From NCBI GenBank assembly GCA_028534125.1, contig CM052825.1, forward strand, positions 620,001 to 684,000: a stretch of 64,000 nucleotides of DNA, given 5' to 3'. Shown piece by piece: positions 1 to 25,590 of this stretch; positions within the stretch are counted from its first letter, which is position 1, and each line of letters begins with the position of its first letter. Below the pieces are notes generated by a model, which was not told the origin of the DNA, did no database searches, and saw nothing but the letters and a program-made list of their open reading frames with translations. The stretch is from Lama glama. Taxonomy: Eukaryota. The position numbers and the translations under genes are program-made.

Positions 1-1339
1 GAGTGCGGAAGAGAAGTGGGGTAGCAACCACTGGGAAACAAGATGGGGAGAGGCAGGGCTGGTCTCTGCAGCCTTGGGGCAGGCTTGGGGCTCAGGAGTG
101 TCTCTGGGGTCACAGGTGCAGGATGACAGGTAGGAGCATCCTGCAGGAGTCTCCCAGTCCCTGGACAGGGCAGGAGCCCCCGCCGCCGTCCCCAGAACAC
201 CAGCTGCCCTGCCACCTGGGCAGGTGGACACTTCCCGACGTGACCGCCTCTCCTGCCAGACCCAGTGCTGCTCTGCAGTTCTCGGGGTGCCAGTGGGTGC
301 AGCCTCTGCTCTGCTTTGTCTGCACTGTGCAAGAGAATGACCGAAAGTGGAGGAAAAGTGGGGCCTCTGAGCTCACGCCCAGCACTTGAAGCCCAGCACG
401 TGACTGGTAGTTGACACGTAAGAGCTACTAGTAGCTCATGAAGCAAAGTGTGTCAGTTCTGTGGCTGTGATCTGCCCGTGAACAAAAACTCAGGCAGGTT
501 TTTAACCTAAAGCCCAGCGCAGCCGACAGCTCAGACCCTCACAGCCCCCTTGGGCCTGGCGAGCCGCTGCACAAGCACGTGGGCCCATGAAGGAAAATTC
601 TGAGCAGATTTACTCCGTGTGACGCTTTCCCAAGAATCAAGCCATTCTTTGCCCAGGGCAGGCAACCCCTTGTGGCCGCTCTGCTCCCTCCTCCACCTCA
701 GCTGCGTGTGCGCCCCTCTCTACCGCGGAGGGCCAACAGTTCCTAGTTCCTGCAGACACCTGCGCAGTAGGAGTCCTCCAGGCTGAACCTGTGGTCCACC
801 AGGATGGGTCTGGACCCCAGGGAGGGGCAGGGGCAGCAGGGGACCTGCCTTCTTGCCACCAGTGGGTGGGGCCATCCACCCTGTGTGCCAGCCCTTTCAG
901 ACTCAACCGTTACTGCCCAAAACTGGCTGTGAGCAGAGAGGGAGGGGCTGGGCAGGGGGTGAGGGGGATGTCGTGAGGCTCCCACCCGCACGCGCGCACA
1001 CTGGCTGGCTGCAGACAGACGGGGAGGCCAGGGGTGGCTCAGCTGCCGGGCTCCTTGTTGGCACCAGTTGTGGGGCACAGAGTGAGGCAGGGGAAGCGGA
1101 GGCCCTGAAAGCCAGGCTAGGACGGGAGATGCTCGGGAGCGTAAGGTCATGTGGATGGGGCGGGACCCTCCTCAGGCTGCAGCTCCCACGCCCTCTGCCC
1201 ATGGAGGGGCTTTGAAATGAGAATGGGGGGGAACGTCCAGGGCAGACCCCAGGGCCCATGGACACCCTCAGAGCTGGGTGAGGCCACAGCGGTGGGCTGG
1301 AGGGAAGGCACTCACTCTGCGCTCTCCCCACAGCCCGCC

Positions 1340-2341
1340 ATGTGGAGCTGCGGCCCTCTCAACGGCACGGGCGGGGGTGAGGACCAGCTCCTGTGCCCGC
1401 ACGTCCAGCGGGCCCTGTCCGCCCTGTCCCTGCTCCACCTGGTGGTCGGTGTCCCGGTGGGCCTGGGCTACAACGCGCTGCTGCTCGCGGTCAACCTGCA
1501 GGACCAGGGCAGCATGACCATGCCTGATGTCTACTTCGCCAACATGGCCGTGGCGGGCCTGGTCCTCAGCGCTCTGGCGCCCGTGCACCTGCTGGGCCCT
1601 GGTGCCTCCGGGTGGGCCCTGTGGGACCTGGGCAGCGCGGTCCACATCACGCTGCTCGTGCTGTTCAATGTGTCCTCACTGGTGACCCTGTACTCCACTG
1701 CCCTGCTCAGCCTGGACTGCTACATTGAGCGGGCCCTGCCGCGCACCTATATGTCCAGTGTCTACAACAGCAGGCACGTGTGTGGCTTCGTCTGGGGCGG
1801 GGCGCTGCTCACCAGCTTCTCCTCCCTGCTCTTCTACATCTGCGGCCACGTGGCAGCCAGGCTCGCGGAATGCGCCAGGATGCAGGACACCGAGGCCGCC
1901 GACGCCATCCTGGTGCTCACCGGGTACCTGGTGCCCGGCCTGGCCGTGCTCTATGCACTCGTGCTCCTCTCACGAGTCCGGAAGGCGGACACGCCGCTTG
2001 ACCAGGACGCGGGGTGGCTGGACCCCTCGGTGCACAGGCTCCTGGTGGCCACTGTGTGTGTGCAGTTTGGGCTCTGGACGCCTCACTACCTGACCCTCCT
2101 GGGGCACACGATCCTGGCTGCGCGGGGCAAGCCCCTGGATGGGCACCACCTGCGGATGCTGCGCTTTGCCAAGGACCTGTCACGGTCCCTGGCCTTCGCC
2201 AGCAGCTCAGTGGTGCCGCTGCTTTACCGCTACATCAACAGAAACTTCCCCGGCAAGCTCCGGCGGCTGCTGAAGAAGGTGCACCGTGGGCAGCAGGGCT
2301 GCGCCCTAGACCAGGCGGGGCCGCAGCAGGCGATGGCGTAG
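1340..2341 (+). CDS. GPR146: G protein-coupled receptor 146 (333 aa, single coding exon)
   Basis: ATG at 1340 in cccgccATG, just after a splice acceptor (ctctccccacAG, exon starts 1334). The protein [10 protein letters not shown]...GLGYNALL...[16 protein letters not shown]...[47 protein letters not shown]...PLLYRY is recognisably GPR146, with 7 hydrophobic segments. Confidence 0.96.
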
Positions 2342-11700: not shown

Positions 11701-13000
11701 GCCCGGAAGGCAGGGTGAGCCCAGGGGCGGGAAGACGGTGCTGGACGGTGCAGCCTCAGAGGAGCGGGAGCTGGGTACCCCCGCAGGTGAGCCACCACCC
11801 CCCCCCTCTGGTCGCCTGTCTGCTTTCCAAGCCCTGGCTCTCAGCGTTCAGAGTGAGCCGGTAGACTGGAGCCAGCTTCTCTGAAAACGAAAGTCTGTCT
11901 CTGCTCGAAGTGGGTCCCAGTGGCAAAGAAAACAATCTGAAGTGAGCAGACTTCTCATCCCTGTCCCTGAGGGCAGGCGAGCAGAGGCCGCAGCTCTGTG
12001 TCCTGTAGACGAGGGAGGAAGCTGTCAGAAAGCAGCCAGCGCTGACTGGGTGTTGGGTTTTCCTTCCACGCAGAGGACTGGGCATGAGCCCTGCACAGGG
12101 AGGCCCCTTCCCGGCGGCGGCGGGGCTGCTCCGTGTGCCGGGGACGGGCACTCAGTGTGAGGAGGGCGGGAGGGAGCTGACCCACGCCCCACGTGCCAGG
12201 CTCACCTTGTCATGAAGCTGCTGGGTGGTAAACAGCCCGTCCGGGCGCCTGCTGTCACAGACCGGGAAGTGAGGCCCTGGGCGTCCCCTCGCAGCCAGGC
12301 CTTCAGCAACTCGGGTCGGGCTGGGCCTGGGCGGCGGCTCACCCAGTCCGCATGGACCTTGATTTAAGGCCTGGGGCCTCCCGTCGGCTGCCCCGTCAGC
12401 TCGGGAGAGGCCCGAGTGGTGACCGCAGGGCGGAGGAGTTCCCAGCAGCAGAGCCAGACGGGACTCGAGGTGGTGCTGGGAGGGCCAGGGAACATGTGGC
12501 GGCCCTGCCGGGAGGCACTGACCACAGTGGCCAAGGCTGGGCCCCTCAGGCGAGACCACAACCTGAAGCACACACTCTAGGACGCCGCTGTCAGACACGG
12601 TCCCCTGGCTGGCACAGGAGGGCAGCATGGCCTGCCCGCACCCCCATCAAGACAGTGTACACGTGCTGTTAAACGTGCAGGGTGCGGGGCGGGCGGGGGG
12701 TGTCAGTGGCACTACGGTAATTATGGCAACGACGCATCCGTGTGGAAGCGGGGAAATGCGAAATGGAGCGAGTGGCCCCGCTGGACCTGGAGCTCGCTCA
12801 CAACAATACAGGTCTGACCAGAGAGCACCGAGTGCAGGGGAGGGCGGCCACGAGACGGCGGGACGCAGCCAGGTCTGGACGCCGGGGCTGGGAGGGGCTG
12901 CAAGGACCACCCACACCCACTGTGGACCCCTGGGGCCACGGGGACCGGCCCTTCTAACTCCGGTGAGGCAGAACCCGCTTCCTAGAGCCACTCTGAAAAC

Positions 13001-13187
13001 TATTTAAGGAGCTGCAGCAGAGAACACAATGTTCTCGAGGCTCTGGCCCTGGGAGTCCCCTGGGAGGCTGGACCTTGGCAGCCCTTTTGTGTAGTTGAGG
13101 AAGGGCCCCAGAAGCCCTGGTCCTTGGCCTGAAACTGGCACCAGAACAAGATGGAGGCCTGTCCTCCCAGGAAACCCTGAGCCTCAG
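13001..13187 (+). promoter_or_regulatory. candidate TATA-like box and non-coding first exon for the orphan 7TM gene
   Basis: TATTTAA at 13001 and a consensus donor CAG|GTAAGA at 13187/13188, 2.15 kb upstream of the acceptor at 15338. Motif evidence only. Confidence 0.3.
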
Positions 13188-15354
13188 GTAAGAACCGCCG
13201 TTTCTGCTGGAGCAGCGCAGGCATCAGAGCTCCCGGCTGGAAGGCAGGACAGACGGCCGTGCGGGAAAATGCAAGCAGTTTCATGTGAAGTTAAACACTT
13301 ACCCTGAGAACTGGCAGACCTGCTCTGCGTGCTCACCCAAGAAAAGAAAGTGCTCAAGTGAAAACTACATTCAAATTCTAAAAAGCAGCTTTATTCATAG
13401 AGTCAAAACCCCAACGTTACTCAAACGGAGTGGCCGTCCACACAGCAAGTCCTGCTCAGAGGTGAGGGGCCAGCCCTCTGCCAGGGCAGCATCACAGCAG
13501 GTGCCAAGAACAGGTGGCTCACACGCCCTGGACGTCCGCAGGGGTGGAAAGGGACCACCAGGACAGGCACCGGGGTTCTGGGGTGCCCTGCGTGCAGGGG
13601 GGCTTGTGGGGCTGGATGTCCAGGCCCACGGCCCCCATGGTCTAGGAGCAGGTCTGGACACTGGCCTGGACATCGCTCCATGACTCTCACCTCAGCTGGA
13701 AAGTGGTTTCACACGTGTACCTGCTTCGTGCGGAAAACCAAGGTCTGAGCAAACCTTCACACAGAAGGTGCTCCGACCTGTGCACGTGGGGACACCCCAC
13801 GCGTGGAGACAGTTTGTCCACCATGGCCCCAACTCCTGGGAGCCCGTCTGCTCTCTCCTCTGAGGACCCCCAAGTCCACGGTCTCCCACCGGACAGCTCA
13901 CACCGTGGGGGAGGATGACCCCGTGAAGCTGGAGCCCCTTTCGCCCCAAGGCAGGCCTGGGCTGGAGAGAAGCACTCAACTCGGCGAGGAGCAGGCAAGG
14001 GCTTCCGGTCGGCAGAGTCCGGGACGCACTCCGGGCCCAGCTTGGACTCGCGCCCTCCCTCCGCCTGGCTGGGCGACATGGGACGCGGGGCCCGCCAGCA
14101 CATTAGGTCACACCCACAACTGGGTGGCCCCTGATAAAGAATGCCCCAAATGCCACCAGCAAGGACAAGGGCGTTTGCTCCAGAAGGCCTGAAATGCTGG
14201 CCAGCCTGAGGCTGTTTCCTGCACCAGGGTCAGTGGTTCACAGCATCTTCTTTCCAATTTGCCTTCATCAAGGAAACACTCCAAGTCACTTCCTCTCGGT
14301 CTGGCCACCAGTCCTAGGTGTGACGTCACTCAGGGAGTCACTGACCCCTGAGCCCCGGCAGGTGGAAGACGTCATGACCCCCTGCGGCACACGGGCCCCG
14401 CCACCCCCACAGGCTGGCGGGACGAGAGCAGGGTGCGCACGGGCACGGCTCTCCAGGAAAGCAAGCAAGCAGCCATGTCGCGGCAGACACAGGTTAGTCA
14501 GTGTTCATGTGGCACACGAGCCTGCCACACACACGTGTGCTGAGACAGCCAGCCAGAGGAGCCACGGTGGACCCACGTCTGCACAGACCCCCGCCCACTG
14601 CCCGTGGTCACCATGCAATGGAGCCGGCCTGGCGCAGAGTGAGGACGAGCCTTGGCACACCCGCCGTAGGCTGGGGGCCCGTCCCCAGCAGGGGGAGCCA
14701 CGCCCGCCTTTCAGCGTTTCATTGGGTCCGTCCCCAGTTTTTCCTGCTCGCAATGGCTTTGAACAAACAGCAGTGTGGTCTGCCAGCCTCGCCTGCTGTT
14801 TGGCTGAAATCTAAGGAGGGGGCGACATGTACACAGAAACGAGGTTTTTCCCGTGGCAAGGCCAGGCCAGGAGGGCTGAGCCCTCGCTCCTGGACTCCAG
14901 CTCTGAGCAGAGTCCCCACAAGTGGGCCAGAGCTGGTGACACCTGCAGTGCGGGCACTAGCCGCTCCCCTGGAGGGCAGGGGCCTGGGTGTGGAAAGCAG
15001 GACAATGGGCTCAAAACGGAAGCCCTAGCCCTCCTGCCTGGACACCCCCCATGGAACCCTGTTTGGGAGACAGGGGCCCGGCACACATCTGCTCTAGGGG
15101 CGGGACGGGGAAAGCGGTTTGTCAGCAATGAGGGGAGGGGGTGCTAGAGGGGTGGGGTGAGGAGTCTCCCCAGGATCCACCCCGCAGGGAAGATGGCTGT
15201 TAATACCACGCCCCATGCCCTCACCCTCCGCGGGAAAGGGGGCAAGACCCAGAAATATCTTTAACGAGGTCCCAGACTGTCCCGAACCCAGGGGGCAGCC
15301 TGACGCTAGGCCCACGTCCCCCGCTGCTTCTGTTCCAGGTGGGACCCGGCCGAG

Positions 15355-16344
15355 ATGAGCACCCACAACATGTCCTGGATCCGGTATCCAAGCCGCGTCT
15401 CCACGGCTGTGGAAGAGGTCATAGCCGCGCAGAGCCTCGTGTCCAGGTGCGCGCTTGTCTACACGGCACTGTTCCTACCGCTGAGCCTGGCGGCCGGGCT
15501 CTTCAACTTGACCACCTTTGTCCGAGGCCGCGCCAGGCTGCAGGGCCTGGATGCCTGCCTGGTGGACCTCACTGCCACTGGTCTGCTGGTGACACTGCTC
15601 TCGCTCACAGCGATTGGCCGGCCAGACTACCTGGCCACGACCCACCTGGGCTGTGCCGTTCTGTCCCTCGTGTTCAACATCTGCTACTTCAACGCGCAGT
15701 ACGTGCAGGTGGCCATGCTCTCCGCGTTCCTGCTGCAGTGCCCGTCCTGCCTGCGCGCGGCCCCCCAAGGGGCCCAGAGGCCCGCAGCCAGCCTGGCTGC
15801 CGTTGGGGGCTGTGCCATCTGCAGCTCCCTGGGAGTGGTGGCCCTCCTGGGCACGTCCGGGGAGCTTTACGAACCCACTCTGTGCCAGGTGGACCCACTG
15901 ACCGCCTGGCCCGAGTACGAGATCGTGAAGGTCAGCCTGGGCCTCGGGCTGGCCCTCGTCCTGAAGCTTGTGCTCCTCACCCTGCTTGGCATCCAGCGGG
16001 CTGGCTGGGCGGCTCTGCCCCAGGGGGACGCGGGCTCAGCTCACTGCTGGGTGGTTCTGGCCATCACCCTGGCCTCATTCGCCTGCCGCCTCCTCTACAA
16101 CACCGCGCTTGTCCAGCGGGCCCGGCTGAAGCTGCGGAGGGACATCGGTGCCCCCCGGGACGAGCTGCTCATGAACCTGGCGGAGCTGGCCCTGTTTGGG
16201 GAGAGCTGTGCAATTGCCCTGGCCACCCTCCTCCTCCACCGGCCATGCAGGCAGGCCCTGCTGAGCCTCCCAGAGCGGCTCACCCAAAGGTGCCGGAGGA
16301 GAGAGGCCAGCAACAACTTCTCCCTGAATAGAGTGGGGAGTTAA
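15355..16344 (+). CDS. orphan rhodopsin-like 7TM receptor (329 aa), GPR146/GPER1-related; probable ortholog of mouse C130050O18Rik
   Basis: Uninterrupted 329-codon ORF with GC3-rich codons, preceded by an acceptor (ccgctgcttctgttccAG, exon starts 15339) and gagATG. Seven hydrophobic segments with class A spacing, N-terminal sequon NMS, C3.25 (LGCAVLSL), ECL2 Cys (TLCQVD), TM7 ELALFGESC resembling GPER1 NLAAFSNSC, and helix-8-like RPCRQAL. Confidence 0.88.
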   Translation: MSTHNMSWIRYPSRVSTAVEEVIAAQSLVSRCALVYTALFLPLSLAAGLFNLTTFVRGRARLQGLDACLVDLTATGLLVTLLSLTAIGRPDYLATTHLGCAVLSLVFNICYFNAQYVQVAMLSAFLLQCPSCLRAAPQGAQRPAASLAAVGGCAICSSLGVVALLGTSGELYEPTLCQVDPLTAWPEYEIVKVSLGLGLALVLKLVLLTLLGIQRAGWAALPQGDAGSAHCWVVLAITLASFACRLLYNTALVQRARLKLRRDIGAPRDELLMNLAELALFGESCAIALATLLLHRPCRQALLSLPERLTQRCRRREASNNFSLNRVGS

Positions 16345-17601
16345 GTCGGAGCCCCTACCTCCCAACACAAGCCACACAGGCCAGTGAGGGCCTCTTCCTG
16401 GCTCTGCCAAGACTCAGAGCGACTTGCTCAGAGTCAGCAGGGATGACGGTCTGTCTAGGAGGCACTTAGAAATCAGCTTGATGGGCAACTCAGTTTCTGC
16501 AAAAGCGAGACAGCTCAGCCCAAACCAACACTCACACCTGATGGAATGAGTCTGGAGGGGGCAGGTGCTGGCAACACACCTGACCCAGGCGGGAGGTTCT
16601 ACCTCGTCTGCAAGCCGGCACCTCTCCCCCGCGCCAGCGAAGGGCAAAGAGGGAACCCTGAAAATAGAGACGTTATTTAGGTAACTTGATGGCCACACTA
16701 TACTCTGGCCCTGAATGGCCAGGCTGGTTAACTTCCAGCACCGCCAGCAAGTGGGGGCAGTGCAGACGTCTCCAAAGGCTTGTTTTGTCCTCAAATGTAC
16801 CACCCCTGGAGGTCTGCGGTCTGGTCCCCATGACCTGGTGGACAGGAGGTGGCCGTCCCGGGGTGATCAGTGAAAGTGGTTTCCAAAGTCTCAGCTGTTC
16901 TGTTTGATGTTATCTGCAGAAAGTGAAACATCAGGATGCAGAGCATGGTGATCAGTCTCATTCCATTGTTGTCGCTGGCTTTATGTTAAGATTCTCTTGG
17001 TTGACTAGAGCACAGAGACATGCAAAGAATGGCATCTCTCTGGCTGCATAAGACCTACACCTTTAATAGTTAAAAAAAAAAAAAAAAGAAGCTAGGACCT
17101 TACTTTTTTAGAGCATTTTTCAGACGCAGCAAAATTAGGAAATTGCCTGTTTGCCTCCTGCCCCGAAACATGCACAGCCACCCTCTCAAGGGGGTGCGAC
17201 AGCCCATGAGTACGTGGACACGTCACCGTCGCCCAAGGCCTCGGGTAGATCAGGGTCCACCCTGGGTGCCGCCCATCCTGTGGTTTGGACAGAGGTACAA
17301 CGGCGTGCGTCCTTCACTGTCCAATCAAATGGGAGAGTTTCGCTGCCCTAAAACCCCCAGCCCTCCGCCTGCAGCTTGACCCTGACCCTCCCCGGCGCCC
17401 GCCGAGCCTCTCGCTGTCTCCACAGGTCTGCCGTCTCCAGGCCACGTACTAGAATCACAGAGCGGAGCCTGGTCAGGCGGGCTGAGGCCACACACTAAGG
17501 TGCAGCTTGGAAGCTCGCTTCTCTCTAACGCTGAGCGATACTCCGTTGTTGCGATAGCTTCTATTGTAGTGAATATTTTAATGTTAATCTGCAACCCAAA
17601 G

Positions 17602-17607
17602 AATAAA
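17602..17607 (+). terminator. candidate polyadenylation signal of the orphan 7TM gene
   Basis: AATAAA followed by a CA and a T/GT-rich element (ttttgagtgttctc), ~1.26 kb after the stop. Confidence 0.55.
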
Positions 17608-24225: not shown

Positions 24226-24525
24226 GTGCCCAGCGTTAGGAGCCCCGAGGACATAGCAGCCACGCCCCAGAGGCCAGGCGGACACACGTGCCCCCCCACG
24301 CAGACACTGTCACCTCCTCCATTTGCTCAACTTTCTGCAAATCAAACTCAAATTGCACAAGTGCCACCTGTGAGCAGCTGCGACCTCACGTGTCTAGCTC
24401 ACGTCAAAGAGCCCCACCTTTCCTCCTCAGGATGGACTCACCACTGAACAAGGGCTTCTGGGAGCCCTGTGGCAAATCCTAGGGCCCCGCGCGAGGGGAC
24501 GAGGCGCGAGCCCCGCGCCCGCGGC
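24226..24525 (+). other. GPER1: GPER1 5' UTR part of the coding exon
   Basis: Acceptor ctctgctctcgctcccccAG at 24224-25. The exon start gtgcccag resembles the human exon start gtacccag as I recall it. Confidence 0.6.
24432..24482 (+). other. upstream ORF ([16 protein letters not shown]) in the GPER1 leader
   Basis: AGGATGG strong Kozak context, 16 codons, TAG ending 43 nt before the main ATG. Confidence 0.6.
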
Positions 24526-25590
24526 ATGGAGACGCAGCTGGGCGCCTACAACGGCAGCCCCGCGGGCCTCGACCTGCCCCGCGCGCTGGCCAACGGCTCG
24601 GGCGTGCTCTGGGAGCAGCAGCAGTATGCCATCGGGCTCTTCCTCTCCTGCCTCTACACGGTCTTCCTCTTCCCCATCGGCTTCGTGGGGAACATCCTGA
24701 TCCTGGTGGTCAACATCCGCTTCCGGGAGCGGATGACCGTCCCCGACCTGTACTTCATCAACCTGGCGGCGGCCGACCTCATCCTGGTGGCGGACTCGCT
24801 CATCGAAGTGTTCAACCTGGACGAGCAGTACTACGACCTCACCGTGCTCTGCACCTTCATGTCGCTCTTCCTGCAGATCAACATGTACAGCAGCGTCTTC
24901 TTCCTCACCTGGATGAGCTTCGACCGCTACCTGGCCCTGGCCAAGGCCATGCGCTGCAGCCTGTTCCGCACCAAGCCCCGCGCGCGGCTGAGCTGCGGCC
25001 TCATCTGGATGGCCTCCGTGTCTGCCACGCTGGTGCCCTTCACCGCCGTGCAGCTGCAGCACACAGAGGAGGCCTGCTTCTGCTTTGCGGACGTCAGGGA
25101 GGTCCAGTGGCTGGAGGTCACGCTGGGCTTTGTCGTCCCCTTCGCCGTCATCGGGCTGTGCTACTCACTCATCGCGCGGGTGCTGGTCTCGGCGCAGGGG
25201 CACCGGGACCTGCGTCCTCGCAGGCAGAAGGCCCTCCGCATGATCTTCGCCGTGGTCCTGGTCTTCTTCATCTGCTGGCTGCCTGAGAACGTCTTCATCA
25301 GCGTCCACCTGCTGCAGCGCCCGCAGCCAGGGGCCGCCCCCTGCCAGCAGTCCTTCCGCCACGCCTACCCGCTGACTGGCCACATCGTCAACCTGGCGGC
25401 CTTCTCCAACAGCTGCCTGAACCCCCTCATCTATGGCTTTCTCGGGGAGACCTTCAGGGACAAACTGAGGCTGTACGTCGAGCAGAAAACCAGCGTGTCG
25501 GCGCTGAGCCGCGTCTGTCACGCTGCCCTGAAGGCGGTTGTCCCGGACAGCACCGAGCAGTCAGAGGTCAAGTTCAGCAGCACCGTCTAG
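24526..25590 (+). CDS. GPER1: G protein-coupled estrogen receptor 1 (GPR30), 354 aa from the first in-frame ATG
   Basis: [100 protein letters not shown], and C-terminal class I PDZ-type SSTV. Confidence 0.98.

Follow-up and report, generated by a model that had tools for sequence, protein, structure and literature searches.

An intact GPER1-linked gene in the llama: the camelid orthologue of C130050O18Rik, a predicted seven-transmembrane protein, and the class A motifs it lacks

What becomes of a receptor gene whose product lacks the motifs by which class A receptors are canonically activated, while its reading frame stays intact? The question is raised by a 329-codon open reading frame (ORF) in a 64,000-nucleotide stretch of the Lama glama genome (contig CM052825.1 of assembly GCA_028534125.1, positions 620,001 to 684,000; hereafter the window), which stands between a GPR146-like ORF and GPER1 (Table 1). 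A sequence-only reading of the window had described a clean ORF encoding a seven-transmembrane (7TM) orphan receptor without the class A activation motifs, and the ORF runs from its ATG exactly as described there. Our analysis indicates that it is the orthologue, in camelids, of the mouse gene C130050O18Rik and a relative of GPER1, and that its product is an atypical 7TM protein that would not activate G proteins through the canonical microswitches. The identity and descent we regard as near certain; the mechanism, non-canonical signalling, is about evenly balanced, and the account as a whole stands only a little above even.

Orthology, ancestry and predicted fold

A protein search with the 329-residue product returned 63 clusters, matched over the full length with E values from 1e-19 to 1e-194. 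The homologue in Camelus ferus is 95% identical, and identities of 53-77% are found in horse, rhinoceros, seals, dog, moles, shrews, tree shrew, colugo, lagomorphs and many rodents, as well as in afrotherians, marsupials and platypus. Two rodent entries, P0023 and P0029, are named 'RIKEN cDNA C130050O18 gene' and match at 62-63% identity with 100% coverage, through which the mouse counterpart that had earlier been proposed is established as an orthologue. Among the mammalian members, gene tree and species tree agree, with camelid branches of ordinary length. From these comparisons we identify the ORF as the single-copy camelid orthologue of mouse C130050O18Rik and rat LOC102546864, which are like it in their motif states, in adjoining GPER1 and in full-length identity (60-63%). 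Compared with the mouse protein, camelids have G rather than S/N at position 2.50 and I-A rather than N-S at 7.49-7.50, together with a one-residue insertion (C231); none of this amounts to a substantive difference.

The gene itself is already known: it is annotated as 'uncharacterized LOC' in many genomes and has been mentioned in the literature. Rat LOC102546864, predicted to encode a 334-amino-acid membrane protein resembling G-protein-coupled receptors, was the sole uninformatively annotated member among 105 CSF1R-dependent microglial transcripts; microglia and most tissue macrophages express its mouse orthologue, and 1:1 orthologues were reported from most vertebrates but not from primates (PMC7941205). 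Beyond three gene-list mentions and that paper, the literature searched yielded nothing, whether under other names of the gene or as a description of its motif loss. Newly described here, with no match in the literature searched, are the paralogy with GPER1, the loss of the class A X.50 reference residues in mammals, the Arg at the toggle switch and a constraint that is stronger outside the membrane than inside.

When 1.8 billion representatives were searched with a profile, 42 proteins came up. Beyond mammals, members of the family occur in reptiles (Anolis and a Phrynosoma fragment), amphibians (the newt Lissotriton), fishes (sturgeons, bowfin, bichirs, gar, arapaima, a mormyrid and percomorph teleosts) and the shark Mustelus, and a UniRef entry, P0067, is a further member. 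A lamprey relative, P0102, is a weak match (E 2.4e-4) yet full-length, and has Arg at 6.48 and a motif of the C-terminal tail in common with the fish members. By these matches the family reaches shark, and probably lamprey. The tail motif, N-x-x-I/V-M-x-P-x-I/V-E-I/V past helix 8, is found in lamprey, shark and ray-finned fishes; mammals are without it and end instead in N-S-x-S-L-x-R-V-G-S.

The relationship to class A receptors, and to GPER1 in particular, becomes visible only with a family profile, because the single window sequence matched nothing in Pfam even at an E value of 10, leaving the 7tm_1 gathering threshold (30.5 bits) unreached, and nothing in the PDB. A profile made from an alignment of 30 mammals, which also served as input to AlphaFold, had GPER1 as its best match in the PDB (E 3.7e-8), followed by CXCR2 (5.7e-6), CXCR1 (8e-4) and CCR6 (9e-4). 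Aligned by hhalign to the GPER1 of the window, the family profile gave a probability of 86% (E 5.5e-6, 245 columns). The Pfam check proposed with the sequence-only reading thus failed for the window protein itself and succeeded for two distant members, P0067 (34.4 bits) and lamprey P0102 (41.9 bits), which support class A descent transitively because they pass the 7tm_1 threshold. The closest detectable relative, by these profile comparisons, is GPER1, and after it come receptors of the chemokine type. The ORF is not a GPER1 orthologue, as GPER1 itself lies downstream in the window and the two proteins are 18% identical. With the GPR146-like neighbour there was no detectable profile similarity (hhalign probability 1.7%), and a three-way tandem origin that includes GPR146 is for this reason unsupported.

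Because the two genes are adjacent and GPER1 is the best relative, GPER1 and the C130050O18Rik-type gene are probably ancient tandem duplicates; their paralogy goes back at least as far as the jawed-vertebrate ancestor. Outside the window the evidence for linkage is indirect: the gene and GPER1 are found on equal-sized contigs in Tupaia, Galeopterus, Dipodomys, Sciurus, Ictidomys, Thomomys, Sorex fumeus, Anolis, Lissotriton and Erpetoichthys; in Acipenser one 226-kb contig carries both, under the locus tags FKN15_047910 and FKN15_047912; and several gene models fuse the gene with GPER1 or GPR146. On this showing the linkage with GPER1 looks conserved across vertebrates.

The seven helices noticed in the sequence recur in the AlphaFold model, which has seven long helices and a helix 8 (pLDDT 74.7, pTM 0.73). 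Foldseek matched the model with a probability of 1.0 to chemokine, apelin, ACKR3 and GPR30 (GPER1) structures; US28, CCR1, CXCR3 and ACKR3 were among the top matches, and GPR30 gave the lowest root-mean-square deviation (rmsd), 4.5 Å. VIA-align superposed it on many class A receptors with Z scores of 21-22 and an rmsd of 3.4-4.4 Å over 250-280 residues, and the ESM Atlas placed the protein in chordate clusters without names and then among 7tm_1 clusters. The protein is accordingly modelled as a class A 7TM bundle with helix 8.

Lost motifs, retained residues and the distribution of constraint

Motif states were read from three alignments to GPER1 (HMMER, hhalign and MAFFT), gap-free around each site, and tabulated over an 82-row alignment of 80 family proteins, the window protein and the GPER1 of the window. 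The replacements that had been listed by hand hold in these alignments: G76 stands for D2.50, A124-F125-L126 for DRY, G151 for W4.50 and A200 for P5.50, CWLP has become CRL with P6.50 deleted, and I287-A-L-A-T291 takes the place of NPxxY. One position had been misread in the other direction. N1.50 was thought to be retained, but the Asn in question, N51, aligns to 1.53, where N occurs in therians only; position 1.50 is G48. N1.50 is therefore lost as well, and all seven X.50 residues are non-canonical in mammals, so that the mammalian protein, as aligned, has none of the seven class A reference residues.

The distribution of these states over the family suggests a long history, and by the alignments the losses are real, mostly ancient and partly stepwise. 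DRY, W4.50, W6.48/P6.50 and NPxxY are missing family-wide. No member has DRY, positions 3.49-3.51 varying freely, and 4.50 is variable too. N1.50 is kept only in lamprey, and P7.50 only in the same relative, most mammals reading N-S-L-A-T/I at 7.49-7.53. P5.50 is present in every non-mammal and lost in all mammals including platypus. In helix 6 a four-residue deletion at 6.47-6.50 removes P6.50, and Arg occupies 6.48 in every tabulated member except three percomorph fishes, which have L or H. At 2.50 most fishes and amphibians have D/E; Anolis, shark and most mammals have N, and others S/G/H/C.

The Cys at 3.25 (C100), the Cys of extracellular loop (ECL) 2 (C177), the NMS sequon and helix 8, all noted in the initial inspection, are confirmed; the two Cys are invariant in every member including lamprey and are also found in GPER1, with which the family has in common the C3.25-ECL2 disulfide, C6.47, S7.46-C7.47 and helix 8. 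GPER1, a class A receptor of the gamma branch, differs in keeping N1.50, D2.50, DRY, W4.50, P5.50, CWLP and NPLIY. Among the 30 mammals 60 columns are invariant. They include N5, M6, W8, Y11 and P12 of the N-terminus and C177, Q178, D180, W185, E187, Y188, E189 and K192 of ECL2, the most strikingly conserved loop, whose C, Q, D, P, A, Y and K are kept as far as shark. Across 16 jawed-vertebrate members, conservation extends to R89-P90-x-Y92 in ECL1, C100, N108, C177-Q-x-D-P...Y188...K192, C244-R245-L246, Y248, A276-E277, S284-C285, H295-x-P297-C298 and C313.

Two invariant extracellular Tyr stand beside acids, in R-P-D-Y of ECL1 (15619-15630) and P-E-Y-E of ECL2 (15907-15921). As pure speculation, these contexts might be likened to the tyrosine-sulfation sites of chemokine receptors.

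Two acids stand in transmembrane helix (TM) 7. Every jawed-vertebrate member has E7.39, at the position where chemokine receptors typically carry an acidic anchor, and E7.45 is found in all mammals and in Anolis, precisely where 2.50 has no D/E. An acid at 2.50 (fishes, amphibians and lamprey) or at 7.45 accompanies R6.48 in all but one member, and the three percomorph fishes without R6.48 are also without both acids.

A metagenome scan for host-derived DNA of orthologues gave no match. To estimate constraint, we set mean pairwise protein identity beside that of GPER1, the matched control, across one panel of eight species: that of the window, Tupaia, Galeopterus, Dipodomys, Sciurus, Ictidomys, Thomomys and Sorex. 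Overall identity is lower in the C130050O18Rik family (0.66 vs 0.85), and it is higher on the outer side than on the inner, a difference that GPER1 does not show. Intracellular loops (ICL) 1, 2 and 3 score 0.47, 0.27 and 0.37 against 0.86, 0.86 and 0.92 in GPER1; ECL1, ECL2 and ECL3 score 0.70, 0.69 and 0.73 against 0.93, 0.84 and 0.90; and the N-terminus is the more conserved of the two (0.78 vs 0.70). Within the helices, the extracellular halves stand at 0.76 (GPER1 0.94) and the intracellular halves at 0.64 (GPER1 0.95). Intracellular loops and helix 8 together reach 0.45 against 0.73 for the extracellular parts, where GPER1, 85% conserved across these species and tightly conserved on its intracellular side, has 0.89 against 0.80. 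The difference between extracellular and intracellular identity is +0.166, a value reached in 0 of 10,000 residue permutations, and -0.036 in GPER1. Constraint is tightest in the N-terminus, ECL1, ECL2, TM3 and TM7 and loosest in the intracellular loops and helix 8.

The same comparisons indicate a gene that evolves faster than GPER1 and has yet been kept open from shark to mammals. Full-length open frames are present in about 60 mammalian clusters and in lizard, newt, sturgeon, gar, bichir, teleosts and shark; by standard mutation spectra, such a frame would be incompatible with neutral decay. That the ORF is decaying or non-functional, a pseudogene or annotation artefact open by chance, is close to refuted, for although it evolves faster than GPER1, appears lost in many lineages and has left a degraded-looking fragment in a river dolphin, the full-length open frames extend to distant vertebrates, 60 columns are invariant in mammals, the gene tree matches that of the species and gives the camelids branches of ordinary length, and the rodent transcripts are regulated.

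What the protein may do

We favour the view that the gene encodes a 7TM protein which binds a ligand or partner and in which selection has acted on the extracellular face and the polar core, not on a G-protein-coupling surface; selection of this kind would make it an atypical receptor that does not use the canonical microswitches to activate G proteins. Arg 6.48, which is invariant, probably forms a pair with a buried acid (in fishes and amphibians D/E2.50, in amniotes E7.45), and judging from the residues present, the pair would fill the Na+ site of class A receptors and tie TM6 to TM2/TM7. E7.39 probably faces the binding pocket. By transfer from the rodent literature, the probable site of action would be macrophages and microglia. 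The initial suggestion that signalling through G proteins does not take the usual form is thus upheld by inference only, from the motif losses and from intracellular loops and helix 8 being the least constrained parts of the protein.

Several points weigh against this view. Motif loss is no proof of lost G-protein coupling, and variable intracellular loops are also found in some functional receptors. Constraint was measured at the protein level, and expression in camelids is extrapolated from rodents. The pairing of R6.48 with an acid has an exception in the shark (N2.50, G7.45, R6.48), and the covariation represents about two or three independent evolutionary events. Finally, the protein sets contain no relatives of the gene in primates, ruminants, whales, cats, xenarthrans, birds, turtles or crocodilians. 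A control search of the same database with GPER1 finds cattle, sperm whale, hippopotamus, lion, meerkat, several primates, sloth, anteater, armadillo, tenrec, aardvark, gharial, tortoise, quail, python and many more, none of which groups is represented among the relatives of the gene, and because the family is absent where GPER1 is present, its function must be dispensable in many lineages.

This patchy range fits repeated loss, with missing annotation as the alternative, and repeated loss would leave camelids as the sole artiodactyls in these data with an intact copy. In the river dolphin Pontoporia blainvillei a model misnamed 'OTX2' (P0094) contains a 104-residue piece at 48% identity, with TM4 deleted and invariant residues replaced, which looks like a decayed remnant and hints at loss in cetaceans. 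A Myotis brandtii model named 'GPR146' (P0063) has an 85-residue piece of the protein fused to GPR146. In line with the earlier statement that no annotated human protein-coding gene is known here, no primate protein appears among the relatives, where the GPER1 control finds many, and PMC7941205 agrees; the primate absence rests on protein lists and that paper.

A fuller version of the favoured account would run as follows: a tethered cation, Arg 6.48 with an acid whose place shifted in amniotes from 2.50 to 7.45, replaces Na+ and locks the bundle, giving a G-protein-silent binding or scavenging receptor of myeloid cells whose site, formed by the N-terminus, ECL1, ECL2 and E7.39, recognises an ancient ligand, and which was lost in primates and several other lineages. 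In this detail the account is tentative and rather doubtful.

The atypical chemokine receptors ACKR1-4 and viral receptors of the US28 type offer a further comparison, with a similar fold, E7.39, a degenerate DRY region and, as in the rodent orthologues, expression in immune cells. They differ in that ACKRs are altered mainly in the DRYLAIV motif and retain CWxP and NPxxY, whereas in the C130050O18Rik family every microswitch is gone. Membership of the ACKR group is not supported: the profile matches to CXCR2, CXCR1 and CCR6 are weaker than that to GPER1, and CWxP and NPxxY are absent.

Among the alternatives, a conventional G-protein-coupled orphan receptor, in which unusual residues elsewhere compensate for the missing motifs, survives best, and we consider it unlikely. 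Its appeal lies in the class A fold and the GPER1/chemokine-receptor ancestry, in the conserved core of TM3 and TM7 and a helix 8 with C313, and in fish members that still have D2.50 and P5.50. It would have to accommodate seven non-canonical X.50 positions in mammals, the family-wide absence of R3.50 among freely varying neighbours, the deletion of the TM6 proline kink, and an ICL2 whose pairwise identity is far below that of GPER1 in the same species (0.27 vs 0.86).

It is improbable that a protein of 7TM fold and repurposed receptor ancestry has taken on a non-receptor job, as a lipid or ion handler or in a structural or trafficking role. Conservation is strongest on the extracellular loops and N-terminus, which with the sequon and the disulfide pair make up a typical ligand-binding surface, and no similarity to transporter families was found for the window protein; such a job would nevertheless suit the charged Arg and Glu buried in the bundle, the lost transducer interface and the lack of a Pfam match.

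Less probable again is the proposal made with the sequence-only reading, that the protein is a heterodimer partner or decoy which modulates its neighbours GPER1 or GPR146. The ancient, conserved linkage with GPER1, its closest paralogue, is what one would expect from tandem duplication and is silent on binding. Expression in rodents is reported to be restricted to macrophages and microglia and to depend on CSF1R, unlike the broad pattern of GPER1, and GPER1 persists in many lineages where the gene is not found.

Should the atypical receptor that we favour prove real, it would be a clean natural case of a receptor fold that is retained to bind but does without the G-protein machinery, and a protein to deorphanise in myeloid cells. 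The macrophages and microglia of mouse and rat express a surface protein without a human counterpart, which matters for the transfer of myeloid findings from rodents to humans.

The locus and its sequence elements

The coordinates of the gene, its landmarks and its neighbours are collected in Table 1. The position between GPR146 and GPER1 claimed for the ORF is borne out by 7tm_1 matches in both flanking ORFs, the gene order in the window being GPR146-like ORF, 329-codon ORF and GPER1. The GPR146-like neighbour appears to be itself a divergent class A receptor, because it reaches only 52 bits against 169 for GPER1; as listed, its ORF opens with GTG, and translation probably starts at an ATG inside it. 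The splice acceptor and downstream AATAAA described earlier were both found as candidate motifs. In-frame stops lie 13 and 15 codons 5' of the ATG, between the candidate acceptor and the start.

Table 1. Positions in the window of the gene, its candidate signals, its diagnostic residues and the neighbouring receptor ORFs
Feature	Position	Strand	Basis
GPR146-like receptor ORF, upstream neighbour	1151..2341	+	Pfam 7tm_1, 52 bits
Polypyrimidine tract and AG, candidate splice acceptor of the single coding exon	15322..15338	+	Sequence only
Coding sequence, 329 codons and stop, ATG start	15355..16344	+	ORF; full-length homologues
N5-M6-S7 N-glycosylation sequon, extracellular N-terminus (N-M-[ST]-W-x-x-Y-P)	15367..15375	+	Alignment
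G76 at 2.50 (class A sodium-site Asp)	15580..15582	+	Alignments
A124-F125-L126 replacing DRY (3.49-3.51)	15724..15732	+	Alignments
ECL2 block C177-Q-V-D-P-L-T-A-W-P-E-Y-E-I-V-K192	15883..15930	+	Alignment
C244-R245-L246 replacing CWxP (6.47-6.50)	16084..16092	+	Invariant in mammals
TM7 segment with E277 (7.39) and E283 (7.45)	16183..16203	+	Alignment
I287-A-L-A-T291 replacing NPxxY (7.49-7.53)	16213..16227	+	Alignments
Nearest 3' AATAAA, candidate poly(A) signal, 1.26 kb past the stop	17602..17607	+	Pattern search
GPER1, downstream neighbour	24469..25590	+	Pfam 7tm_1, 169 bits; orthologues named GPER1

A second-frame ORF at 15339-16331 (+), 330 amino acids from a GTG, overlaps nearly the entire gene. 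Its translation is of low complexity and rich in Pro, Gly and Arg, as is typical of off-frame GC-rich coding DNA, and we take it to be an artefact, a by-product of the 64% G+C content. Further downstream, in the presumed 3' untranslated region, a run of 16 A (17072-17087), flagged as a repeat, could prime oligo-dT internally and so mimic a transcript end in libraries based on poly(A).

No sequencing run recorded as RNA contained the stretch. The reads that cover it, from two runs, are genomic, because their depth is even (12-15) across coding and non-coding parts and they form heterozygous bubbles; about 90% of the stretch is represented, and neither joints nor transcript ends were seen. Fourteen small runs of a second organism (14800-17000) each gave exactly 0.24 of the sampled words; one second-organism read run aligned to 12700-13308 only, at 95-99% identity, and another gave no alignment. 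In two other individuals of the window species the coding sequence carries four variants, three of them synonymous (15387, 15798 and 16272). The only replacement, 16022 A->T, changes Q223 to L in ICL3, and both of the other individuals read T.

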